Assembly (NCBI RefSeq): GCF_964204645.1 | Contig: NC_134030.1 | Location: 22,032,210-22,096,209 of the forward strand | Direction: 5' to 3' | Length of the DNA stretch: 64,000 nucleotides | DNA from: Tubulanus polymorphus | Lineage: Eukaryota; Animalia; Nemertea | Shown: piece after piece, positions 61-22,240 of the stretch | How the letters are laid out: each line of letters begins with the position of its first letter | How positions within the stretch are numbered: the stretch's first letter is position 1 | The notes under the pieces: generated by a model | Seen by the model: the letters and a program-made list of their open reading frames with translations, nothing else | Database searches by the model: none | Told to the model about the DNA's origin: nothing | Program-made: the position numbers and the translations under genes

Positions 61-3000
61 ATCATGAGTATTGGGTGAAAACACGTGACCAACCGCAGTC
101 GGGTATTTATAGAATTATTAACCCTTTATTTCTTTCATGAATACAGTTCATAGTTTTAGAGCTCATCCACTAATCATCTGAATGATATACAACTGATTTT
201 GCTTCATTATCAAAACCGTAATTATCAATTTAAGTTTATGGTTAACAACGTAATTTTTGACTATTTTATTGTATGTTTTTGGTAGAATGCAATTAACCGA
301 CAATTATTTCTATCTTTGAAGCACATTTGTAATAATGGCCTCCTATATTAACTCACTGGATACAATGGACACTCGTTTACGCAATGAAATAAACCAAATA
401 ATTTGGACCAAGAAACTTTTAGATTTTTCGGAAACTATTCCATATTCACGTACTAAATCCTGGACTTCACTTGTAGCACGTGAGGATCCACCAGGTGCAA
501 GGAGGCAATTCCTTGCTATTTTTAGAGTCTGACCTTTTCGTGAGAAAGAAGAAAAAGCATGTGAAAATCCCTGATAATGTGTCGGCCTAAGCGTTGTTGT
601 CGTCGTTAACCGGCGCTTTTTTCGGCAGTCCTCCAGTTCATGGTGTTTCATCGATCGTTCATTGATGTGTTTGGTTGAATGACTGGACTGGTTCCGGGTC
701 AGACGTATAGTCTGATCGTGCCTAGAACGCGTCACCACGCATCTAATTTTAAAACGTTTCCCGCGGGAGGATACCCACTAATTTAACCCTCCCTCAAATC
801 CTGGATCCGCCACGTAAGATGCGGCAATTGAGGATTCCCATTGAAAATCAACTATACACGAGAAACATTTTTGGATGTCGTTTTTTCATGTATATTTGTA
901 GCTAATATTTGTGTTGTTTTGTTTAACAGTTAAAACTGGAGACTTTGAGGTCATTGAAACATTCAGTCCAGGTATATTTGATATTTATTGTAATTTCATT
1001 TCAATAAAACAATATAAACTCAGATAATTCAGTTATAAATCAACTACTTGTTCGTAACGTCGATGAATTCATTTAAACAATTAATTCATTGTCAATTTTT
1101 CTTTCTAGAAATTGTTAGAATAATTGTCGATGTTTACGGAACTGAGAATGATTGGATGATAACGAGAGATAAGGATAAACAAGGTAAGAGGAGTGATGAC
1201 TCAGTTGCCAGGGTAAGAGCCAAACCGGCTGATTGGTTTATTGCAACCCGGGGCCGGGTTAATAGACTGGTATTAACTTTAAACCCGGGGTTAGTTTAAT
1301 TAATTTTCAATTAAGTTAGCCCCCGGGTTAAAGATAATACCAGTCTATAAAACCGGGTCCTGCATACAATACTGTACCGGAATATAACACTTCCCCGGGC
1401 CTCCTATCTTCACCCAACAGTAATTCAAACTGTTTGATGCACAGGTTTTTTTTATTATTGAAAACAATGCTTTCTATATTTCATTTCAGCAATAGCTATC
1501 AGAGAATTCCTGTTCCAACAGTTATCACATGATGAAAGTAAGTAATTGTTACCTATAGTTAAAGCTATGTACATCACATGTGCTTTATGTGAATATGCAC
1601 ATATGAATTCAGTTGACATGCACATGTGAGTTATATGCACATGTTCATGTTATTATTTGTTTTACATTCATGAGTAATGCATGCATGTACATGTGAATGA
1701 TACTTACATGTGAACATGTGCATGTGAGTTTTAACTGCGCATATGGTTTGTTTACATGCACATGTGTTTAAGTTTAAGTAGAGTTTGATCAATGTCTATG
1801 TATTTTCAGGTGTGTTAGATTTGGTGAAAGAAATCCTAAGTAAGTTTACGAAATGACTCAGTATTTCCTCTTCAACTCGAATCATGGATTCAAATGTGTT
1901 TATAATTATCTGTTGACAGGAAAATACTTTAGAATAAAGAATTTAAAAACGAAACTATCAAATGAGATCGGTAAGATTTGATTGAATTCAGTTATTGATT
2001 TATGAGTTTATTGATTATTATTCTACTGTCAACTCATTTTGTAAATGTATTACAGATACATTACTGAACAAGAAGAGGTCAATAGATGGCGCTGATGCAG
2101 TTTACAATAGAGATGAAGGTACTTTATTATTCACTGTTCAAATGAAATATTCAACTTTGCTGATAGAAATGTAACGAATTCTATTCAACATGGCCGCATG
2201 GCAGCCTTTTGGCAATAATGAATAAACCTGATAAAAGCGACCAGTTTAAAATTTCATTTTAAACATATCAGACTAGAGCTTCAGAAATACTCAAGTTACA
2301 ACAAAATTATCAAATTTACAATTGTTATTTAAGAAATAAGATGTGATACAAAGGGTAATGATACAATATGATACAGAATTTAAATTAAACTAATTTCAAA
2401 TCTATTTTTTCCGTGTTTCAGATGTAATTCATGTTAGTTTTATTACGCAATCTAATGAAGAGAAAAGACCCCTGACAGACAAAGAGAAAGAGTTCATCAG
2501 AGATGGTCAGTAAAACTATGAATTCTATCTCTGAGTTCAATTTTCACATGTAGTTGACTACACGGGTTACCACGAGTCTTAAGAGTGTTTAAAGAACTTA
2601 CTGGCGAAAATGGCTTACTTTTTGGAAAAAAGTAGTGATTTACTGTGTCACCAATATTCAGGATTTATCTGTATTTATCGATTTTCAAAATAAAACGAGG
2701 ACCAAAAGAGAAACTGCTCTGCGTGAATCACACTGAGCGTAGGTTTTTTTCGTAGGTTTCAAATCCACAGTAAACGGTTATTATGAATCTATATACTTTC
2801 AGTTGCTTCACCAGTTGAATCTATCGTTGATTTTTTTGCTAAAATGTCCGGTAGGTTCCATAAATCATTTCAGTAAAAATACTGTGGAGTTTGTTGTGGA
2901 ATCATTGAATAATTGATTGTGTTTATTTTTACTGTAGATGCTGAATTATGTGAACAAGGAATATTCAACATTAAACGTAGGTTTTAATTCTCATTTTATC

Positions 3001-21000: not shown

Positions 21001-22240
21001 ACGTCACTGTAGTGTATGATGTTATCTGCTCAATTTCCATCTGGAAAATGAAAAATCACCCATGAAATACTCGGGTTTATTGACTTCATGTAATTGTGAG
21101 AACTATCCATAAATTCTGGTCTGAAGTTGATCTGATGTTATATGTGAATAATATTGCTGTTTATAGTTTGGATGCATAAGTTTTTCAAGAATATTTCATA
21201 TCATTTTCAGAAAAATTTTAAAAAAGCCTGGTTTCCTGGTATAGTTCATACAAAATTTTCATTTTTTTCAGAAATATTTTATTTTATTTTCAGAAAAATT
21301 AAAAGATCTCGGTTTCCTGGTAGATGATTCGAGTAAGTAAATTATACAGTCGTCACTTTCTGATTTAAACCATAATCAAATCACAATTAAGTTTGGGATG
21401 AAATTAAGTTTCGTGTTCGTTGATGAGAATCTGATGTATGATTAAACCGGTTTAATCTGGATTACTGGCAGGACACCAGGATGAAATTCATGTAGTTTGA
21501 GAAATCCAGATTTAAAATCGTATTCCATGAGATACTAGTTGATAATTAAATGAAGATTAGTAACCGAATCAAATCTGGATTAAACTGATTTCTTTCCCGC
21601 ATGGCATTCATCGATCTACCGATCTATGTTTTCGGTAGATCATTAAACGTCAGTTCATTCCTTTGTCGGAGATCTCATAAATATGTATGTGATGTAAGGA
21701 ACACTTTGGACTTAATAAAACACCCAGAAAAAATCAAAGCTAATTCTTACTTAATCAGGGGTGGAATTAGTTGAGGTATTATTAACCATTGTCACTGTTA
21801 ACAGTAAAGCCGTAATTAGTTGAATTTTCAAGAGGTTGTACATTTTATGAAACAGACTGTAGCGGGTGATATATAGTTGTATAAAAACAGTTACAAGCTG
21901 AACACATCTAAAACAGAGCAAACTCTAGGGGCTACTGATAAAGTATTGTGAATATAAGTTAAAGTTGACGGGTATCTACATTTAGGGAGTGTGCAGTTGT
22001 ATTTGGTGTTTGGTATATATTGTAGGGCTTAGTCTAAGGTATGAAACTGCTGGTGATGGTAGATCAAGTATTGAACGGACATCGAGTAGTAGTGGTTGGT
22101 CACCTAGTGGTGATATAGTGAAATATGAAAATGAACCTAAAAGTGGCTGTAGTCAAAGTGCTGCTGATGATAGTCACACATATGGTGATACCGTATCGAG
22201 TGGTGATCGTGAGCTGAGTGATAACGGTACACAAGTCTAG
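61..22240 (+). CDS. R-long copy 1, 3' part (5' end is outside the window): micro-exon-encoded putative cytoplasmic region, 59 exons, about 1060 aa, ending GTQV*
   Basis: Hand-spliced AG/GT exons, all internal ones 3n and phase 1, with no stops: 61-102, 930-971, 1109-1183, 1490-1537, 1810-1839, 1920-1970, 2056-2118, 2422-2505, 2803-2850, 2938-2976, 3186-3203, 3288-3335, 3425-3478, 3586-3633, 3854-3922, 4462-4491, 4741-4779, 4931-5086, 5258-5293, 5370-5387, 5512-5559, 5961-6038, 6171-6218, 6713-6796, 6932-6976, 7061-7111, 7429-7464, 7722-7739, 8157-8207, 8412-8501, 8583-8660, 8751-8798, 9045-9098, 11700-11735, 11975-11992, 12423-12473, 12804-12860, 12945-13022, 13246-13293, 13743-13826, 14086-14130, 14296-14346, 15041-15076, 15573-15590, 16439-16486, 16747-16833, 16915-16992, 17083-17130, 17354-17407, 18340-18375, 19096-19149, 19236-19277, 19379-19420, 20042-20068, 20145-20177, 20474-20509, 20598-20651, 21294-21332, terminal 22026-22240. 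Indels between paralogous exons are multiples of 3. AATAAA at 22571. Confidence 0.8.
1250..1360. mobile_element. About 110-bp palindromic MITE (further copies at 19498-19609, 41181-41294, 44841-44951)
   Basis: Terminal inverted repeats ...TATAGACTGGTATTAACTTTAA...TTAAAGATAATACCAGTCTATAAAACCGG; present at two non-homologous intron sites. Confidence 0.75.
8876..9015. repeat. (TA)n microsatellite
   Basis: Direct reading. Confidence 0.95.
9402..9648. mobile_element. Nested palindromic MITE with about 21-bp TCGAAATTCGACTTA subrepeats
   Basis: Inverted ends CCTAGGTGACATACGAGA / TCTCATTTGTCACCTAGG; right end abuts the next insertion. Confidence 0.6.
9651..11184. mobile_element. Foldback-type element, about 1.5 kb, with an internal CpG-rich 154-bp tandem repeat in inverted orientations
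   Basis: TA-flanked long inverted ends starting TGGTGGCTGATTAGGGCCAAGTT; 154-bp period (ORF starts at 10129, 10283, 10437, 10591, 10745). Confidence 0.8.
13836..14010. repeat. 22-bp minisatellite (TACAGTAAACTACATTTACATC), about 8 copies; about 2 copies in the paralogous intron near 6808
   Basis: Direct reading. Confidence 0.85.
15775..16172. mobile_element. hAT-like MITE (398 bp)
   Basis: Ends CAGGGGCGGATC / GGAGCCACCCCTG flanked by a near-perfect 8-bp TSD GGAGGCTT / GGCGGCTT. Confidence 0.65.
20733..20864. repeat. (TA)n microsatellite
   Basis: Direct reading; absent from the paralogous site near 46230. Confidence 0.95.

Follow-up and report, generated by a model that had tools for sequence, protein, structure and literature searches.

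Several described systems come close to LOC141906853 of the nemertean Tubulanus polymorphus, whose 3′ part opens the 64,000-nucleotide (nt) stretch of genomic DNA analyzed here (C6:22032210-22096209, "the window"). The micro-exon genes (MEGs) of schistosomes build their coding sequence mainly (up to 75%) from symmetric exons of 36 nt or less (PMC8293314, PMC4015677, PMC7653826), and an operational definition of a MEG calls for at least seven exons, at least half of which are shorter than 70 nt and multiples of three, with a run of at least four (PMC7653826). AjNLRC4 of Apostichopus japonicus is a membrane receptor combining immunoglobulin (Ig) domains, a transmembrane (TM) helix and NACHT (PMC8699970; also PMC13133943), while one survey reported no NACHT-leucine-rich repeat receptors (NLRs) in nemerteans (PMC11508797). 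Botryllus fester and FcoR are paired receptors encoded by linked, clustered genes (10.1101/2024.10.16.618699), and Hydractinia Alr is a cluster of divergent Ig-TM genes with one exon per domain and diverse cytoplasmic tails (10.1101/2022.03.04.482883).

The original prediction for the window was a hidden, stand-alone micro-exon gene of 58 exons. This was not the case, as the exons form the tail of a RefSeq-annotated Ig-TM receptor that starts 6 kb upstream of the window. An Ig exon of the window, used as a query, returned RefSeq proteins of T. polymorphus, and the protein of LOC141906853 X1 (XP_074652395.1, P0056, 1,622 amino acids (aa)) is identical to the genomic exon model minus one exon, e36 (12423-12473), employing 57 of the 58 internal exons. 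Exons were joined solely for testing that the frame stays open and that the product equals the RefSeq protein; homology queries were single exons and RefSeq proteins. The gene and its surroundings are laid out as follows (C6 coordinates for the first line, window coordinates for the rest).

C6:22026167-22032189, upstream of the window: 5′ receptor exons (signal-peptide exon, four ectodomain exons, TM exon, four Cys-rich exons, exon J)
61..5293, + strand: tail exons e1-e19, first helical region; model equals XP_074652395.1
4931-5086, + strand: e18, a predicted long charged helix
5370..11735, + strand: exons e20-e34, a cassette of 15 exons in its first copy
9100..11690, no strand: longest intron (2.6 kb, intron 33), with a foldback-like insert
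11975..18375, + strand: exon block e35-e50, second cassette copy, arisen by a DNA duplication that included the introns (77-90% identical)
12423..12473, + strand: e36, a tandem duplicate of the e37-type exon with AG/GT intact, absent from the RefSeq models of LOC141906853 and LOC141906946
19096..21332, + strand: e51-e58, the sole confidently folded part of the tail (~108 aa)
22026..22240, + strand: last coding exon, Ser-rich, ending in T-Q-V and closing the frame

LOC141906853 has 69 coding exons and all 68 of its introns are in phase 1. The ectodomain exons measure 285, 333, 336 and 270 nt, the TM exon 99 nt and exon J 75 nt, while the four exons rich in Cys range from 36 to 93 nt; the signal peptide and TM helix were read from the sequence by eye. 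What defines a type-I member of the Ig superfamily was found here: phase 1-1 exons that each encode one extracellular Ig domain, and a single TM helix. The Ig-like domains lie in the ectodomain, where the fourth exon had no domain assigned, and in the multi-copy sibling P0001 Ig_2, I-set and C2-set_2 all scored above the Pfam cut-off. Since the signal peptide, ectodomain and TM helix lie upstream and every micro-exon lies downstream of that single helix, the micro-exon region is the cytoplasmic tail of a type-I receptor, and we regard it as nearly certain that the 58 exons encode the tail of an antibody-like Ig-superfamily surface receptor. As had been proposed, the tail is predicted to lie inside the cell and to consist mostly of helices. 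Its T-Q-V terminus suggests a class I PDZ-binding-like end, and T-x-V also ends 9 of the 15 NACHT-less RefSeq proteins examined. Our best overall explanation, to which we give a probability of about 0.55, is that LOC141906853 encodes a lineage-specific Ig receptor with a germline-diversified micro-exon tail that acts in innate recognition.

The exon chain itself stood up to closer inspection. The curated chain (61-21332, + strand) spans 2,967 nt and 989 codons with no stop, in agreement with the predicted stop-free product of about 1,000 aa, and all 58 internal exons are bounded by AG/GT, multiples of three and in phase 1, as claimed, with the RefSeq match in support. The exons are 18-90 nt long apart from a single one of 156 nt, and the introns between them are 76-932 nt apart from one of 2,601 nt. 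An unbiased exon scan of positions 1-22300, joining each strong acceptor to the first strong donor at any length, gave 39 top candidates (≤100 nt) on the + strand, 35 of which were multiples of three and open in the phase-1 frame, compared with 0 of 1 in the − strand control. Sixteen of the 58 arose by recent duplication of other exons in the chain, which leaves about 42 independent ones, and the in-frame length pairs listed beforehand (42/45, 63/57, 33/30, 51/48 and 90/87) were all found among paralogous exons. Exons do end mostly in G or A (56/58; G 40, A 16, C 1, T 1), and because only one ends in T, a stop is created at just 5 of the 1,653 possible exon-skip junctions. We rejected the idea that these exon ends are an adaptation; the donor consensus largely accounts for them, and they are therefore no evidence of one.

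The likeness to a MEG held only under the looser definition. By the operational one, 48 of the 69 exons qualify and the longest run is 11, and the signal-peptide-like first exon and the TM exon fit, by sequence reading, the signal peptide or membrane-bound nature of MEG products. Schistosome MEGs further share with LOC141906853 short symmetric exon runs, a tandem family and exon duplication. By the schistosome definition the gene falls well short, with exons of 36 nt or less making up 16 of 69 and 9.5% of coding nt as opposed to up to 75%. Its exons are longer (median 48 nt), its protein reaches 1,622 aa, and its micro-exon part is cytoplasmic and helical whereas the schistosome counterpart is exposed to the host; there is no homology between the two.

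The symmetry of the exons had suggested MEG-like somatic diversification, in which skipping produces many tail isoforms per cell or animal. Every exon could be skipped in frame with hardly any stop at the new junctions, RefSeq lists roughly eight micro-exon skip isoforms (18, 36, 45 and 90 nt) and several TM-skipping or TM-shortening isoforms across 12 module-bearing paralogues, and e36 is omitted in two genes while intact. However, only 1-4 isoforms are given per gene, some of the skips match the exon sets that other paralogues carry and could stem from mis-mapped reads, exon junctions cut helices of the folded e51-e58 block, and the symmetry can be explained without skipping, so we consider this explanation unlikely. 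RefSeq models contain nearly all exons with intact splice sites (54-63 of 57-64 exon matches in five long genes and 47/48 in a shorter gene), the exception being e36 in two genes, a candidate for a mutually exclusive or dead exon. Some exon skipping is likely given that RefSeq lists skip isoforms, though some of these isoforms could come from reads assigned to the wrong one of several near-identical paralogues. Three read runs at the locus were DNA-like with no splice joints, and a putative RNA run gave no alignment.

We propose instead that the tail grew within the phase-1 interval 3′ of the TM exon, where only cassettes with a length divisible by three would be tolerated. If only such cassettes were duplicated and fixed, new exons would automatically be phase 1-1, and since the interval would account for the symmetry, alternative splicing is not needed to explain the pattern. 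Duplications and deletions at the DNA level show the cassette process at work, and from it we infer the deeper origin of the module. Two other features were noted in the chain: the insert in intron 33 consists of nested inverted arms flanking a 154-bp palindromic satellite (9648-11187), with parts of its outer sequence recurring in paralogous introns, and incomplete, degenerate copies of the acceptor and beginning of e58 lie directly 5′ of the functional exon (21167-21332).

Exon inventories of seven tail-bearing paralogues across 264 kb showed that whole exons have been gained or lost between them and blocks of exons duplicated. The e20-e34 cassette is present in one or two copies depending on the paralogue, single exons are doubled in some, e55-e56 are gone from two copies, and C1, C4 and e34 have been knocked out in some by splice-site changes; the e3-e18 region is retained in nearly all copies. 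All 368 AG/GT-bounded paralogous exon copies are multiples of three in length, compared with 147 of 677 (22%) intron indels, and no stop alleles were observed where about 25 were expected. The demonstrated diversification thus lies between gene copies, in the germline. We think it rather likely that germline variation dominates, with the exons mostly constitutive and diversity arising chiefly through unequal exchange in a fast-turnover tandem cluster.

The reading frame of the tail is strictly kept while its amino acids are hardly constrained. In comparisons between paralogues, which gene conversion may affect, the ratio of replacement to synonymous change (pN/pS) was 1.00 (0.73-1.42) for J-e19 and 1.09 (0.86-1.44) for e20-e34, and dN and dS of e1-e34 were near the intron divergence of ~0.09. 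The ratio rose to 1.93 in e51-e58 (95% interval 1.23-3.52, based on 14 synonymous alleles), while dN/dS of the ectodomain exons was 0.25-0.61. These near-neutral values over e1-e34 would suit a tail that is only a length-variable tether or spacer, in which selection acts on the open frame, the anchoring to the membrane and the C-terminal T-x-V only, leaving exon content to drift. The neighbouring paralogue described below remains in frame without 40 exons, and the linker of NACHT-bearing siblings ranges from 42 to 489 aa, both as a tether would allow. Nevertheless, e51-e58 is confidently folded with an excess of replacements, e3-e18 is retained in nearly all copies, and the T-x-V end is missing from some paralogues, which leaves the tether a doubtful, if possible, account of the tail.

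Homologues of the tail were found only in T. polymorphus in two homology searches limited by word and length, and the tail had no Pfam and no PDB-sequence match, which agrees with the original failure to recognize a described family; we also found no published description of the receptor family, the RefSeq models being uncharacterised. The suggested structure check gave a helical prediction with no known fold. AlphaFold placed helices across the whole tail at low confidence except in e51-e58, where four to five helices and two short strands were predicted with a block pLDDT (AlphaFold's per-residue confidence score) mostly of 70-94 (paralogue P0051). Junctions e51/52, e53/54 and e56/57 sit within predicted helices, so exons and folding units do not coincide. 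Older internal repeats were sought by profile-profile comparison with weak results (probability ≤10%), and language-model atlas features were blank for 490-1110. An SH3 domain in e1-e4, guessed by eye, was rejected as the real junction residues differ and Pfam gave no hit, and it is further undercut by e2 being missing from the proteins of several paralogues.

One could also imagine a receptor that serves adhesion or guidance, not immunity, and has a helical scaffold like spectrin or the dynamin stalk. The nearest Ig matches outside the species have 24-37% identity and the one identified is hemicentin-like, a generic three-helix bundle is predicted in e29-e33, and language-model features of e51-e58 lean to Sey1_3HB/GBP_C/GVIN1_C (0.92/0.78/0.77). 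No Pfam, PDB-sequence or fold match corroborated the Sey1/GBP/GVIN1 lead, and no GTPase domain was found in paralogue P0002. With neither sequence nor fold in support, and as immune loci typically show both turnover in copy number and fusion to NACHT, we find an adhesion role improbable.

The siblings of LOC141906853 link the family by architecture to NLRs. Sharing its ectodomain, they carry NACHT, HD2 and a leucine-rich repeat (LRR)-like region, with NACHT above the Pfam cut-off in P0001 and P0004; a single open frame exceeding 900 codons encodes this part, and 18 such matches had no internal stop. NACHT within the Ig-TM polypeptide was seen in P0001, P0004, P0054 and P0081 only, with TM-to-NACHT linkers of 42, 75, 118 and 489 aa among siblings. 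Three loci have the micro-exon module, in a shorter form, 5′ of a NACHT-LRR encoded in one exon, namely P0054 (Ig and TM present), P0055 (model without Ig or TM) and C9 (same exon order); exon phases at NACHT loci are inferred. No NACHT exon occurs inside the array at C6:21.68-22.13 Mb, and P0056 itself has none. In this the window gene differs from AjNLRC4, to which its siblings are alike, by architecture only, in their extracellular Ig, TM helix and intracellular NACHT; the siblings add an LRR-like C-terminus and, at the three loci, the module before NACHT, and the available text describes no such module for AjNLRC4.

Such fusions would fit a tail that lures effectors or proteases of pathogens as a bait or decoy and is coupled to NACHT-LRR in cis in some copies, in trans in others. 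The module sits directly N-terminal to NACHT in siblings, and e51-e58 at 1.93, against 0.25-0.61 in the ectodomain exons, indicates that the inside is diverging faster than the outside. On the other hand, this estimate is built on 14 synonymous alleles among paralogues open to gene conversion, the NACHT-fused copies retain only e58 from the e51-e58 block, and the tail resembles no known host target, so we give the bait little credence. We are similarly sceptical that the module, doubling as the N-terminal effector region of an NLR, is diversified by both germline shuffling and somatic skipping of ~60 exons, though if true this would mean variable output instead of variable recognition. Returning to the innate receptor, LOC141906853 would be the NACHT-less sibling of Ig-TM-module-NACHT-LRR receptors, paired with a tyrosine-motif receptor, and an innate immune role is the one we somewhat favour; AjNLRC4 (PMC8699970) and the fester/FcoR pairs (10.1101/2024.10.16.618699) serve as precedents. 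Ligand binding by the Ig domains may cluster a Cys-anchored, PDZ-tethered helical scaffold; that this scaffold would then partner or tune NLR-fused siblings through the shared module is a tentative suggestion.

Two further observations concern NACHT genes. At C6:18.07-18.09 Mb and 17.59-17.61 Mb, micro-exon modules (+) face NACHT exons (−) as convergent pairs, not fusions. NACHT-LRR paralogues without Ig or TM (P0078, P0082, P0084, P0085 and P0086) have N-terminal, often repeated RHIM-like cores (VQIG/VQMG then D/G-N/K-x-M), which reached only E=3.5 against Pfam RHIM; amphioxus has RHIM-NACHT proteins (PMC4262963).

Several results weigh against our reading. Ig matches of single-copy members are weak and below Pfam cut-offs, constitutive splicing is read from RefSeq models, and a pN/pS near 1 speaks against a precise interaction surface. 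Most of the tail gave no confident fold (mean pLDDT 39-43), and Foldseek, VIA and the atlas gave generic helical matches with no specific structural match. The module tree puts two NACHT-bearing modules on one side of a supported branch (98/95) and has no outgroup, so it does not establish the direction between NACHT-less and NACHT-bearing forms.

Genome-wide, the module has about 19 copies, exon e3 occurring 19 times and the third ectodomain exon in 24 close copies, and 12 units lie in the tandem array at C6:21.68-22.13 Mb. In the units read, a small one-Ig TM gene (gene A) with YxxM/YxN repeats in its tail lies 5′ of each receptor. Canonical immunoreceptor tyrosine-based activation or inhibitory motifs (ITAM/ITIM) were not found in P0056, P0012 or P0011. 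The rest of the window contains:

24934..28364, + strand: gene A of the next unit, with signal peptide, one Ig domain, TM helix and tyrosine-rich tail; family of RefSeq P0012/P0041
31489..46600 (to e58; last exon excluded), + strand: next receptor paralogue, with full ectodomain, TM exon (36475-36573) and J+e1 duplicated
50496..53886 (approximate), + strand: third gene-A copy
57097..63939, + strand: first exons of a third receptor paralogue (those for signal peptide, ectodomain and TM helix, then J and e1-e3), which continues past the window end

In the next receptor paralogue e11-e50 are absent from the genome and the remaining tail exons are all in frame. Its J+e1 tandem duplication lies at 38591-39744, and in RefSeq the gene is annotated as two, LOC141907852 and LOC141906965. 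Through tandem repeats of 82 bp, the first ectodomain exon has its acceptor and 5′ end in 2-5 copies (32686-32838, 57776-58163; L020), possibly as alternative acceptors for that exon. The intron separating the third ectodomain exon from the fourth contains, at 34754-35414, a minisatellite of 51 bp with ~13 copies compared with 2-3 in neighbours, which gives rise to spurious long open reading frames. P0058 and P0063 (LOC141907883 and LOC141906946), three array units apart provided that P0058 is the gene at the window end, are identical over e10-e18, which points to recent gene conversion or duplication.

This arrangement recalls fester/FcoR in its linked pairs, one with tyrosine motifs, its clustering, intergenic recombination and tail isoforms. 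The ectodomains are different, the Tubulanus pairs stand head-to-tail and lack canonical ITIM/ITAM, and Tubulanus is solitary. Alr is similar in its clustered, divergent Ig-TM genes with one exon per domain and varied cytoplasmic tails, but the Tubulanus family has no ITAM/ITIM, a micro-exon tail of 1,100 aa and NACHT-fused members. Signalling receptors of the Alr and FcoR kind are also marked by extreme polymorphism between alleles and by acting in allorecognition; the Tubulanus data come from one assembly. The receptor architecture is real and striking, and the window gene itself shows the defining features of neither these clustered and paired receptors nor AjNLRC4.

With its 69 exons all joined in phase 1, LOC141906853 is an unusually clean and recent case of exon shuffling, in which cassettes are added, dropped and duplicated in a cytoplasmic module. 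Were heavy skipping true, it would provide a cytoplasmic counterpart to MEG- or Dscam-type diversity. Within the family, one Ig ectodomain is joined to a helical module, to NACHT-LRR, or to both, and the Tubulanus siblings extend membrane NLRs from sea cucumbers to a nemertean.

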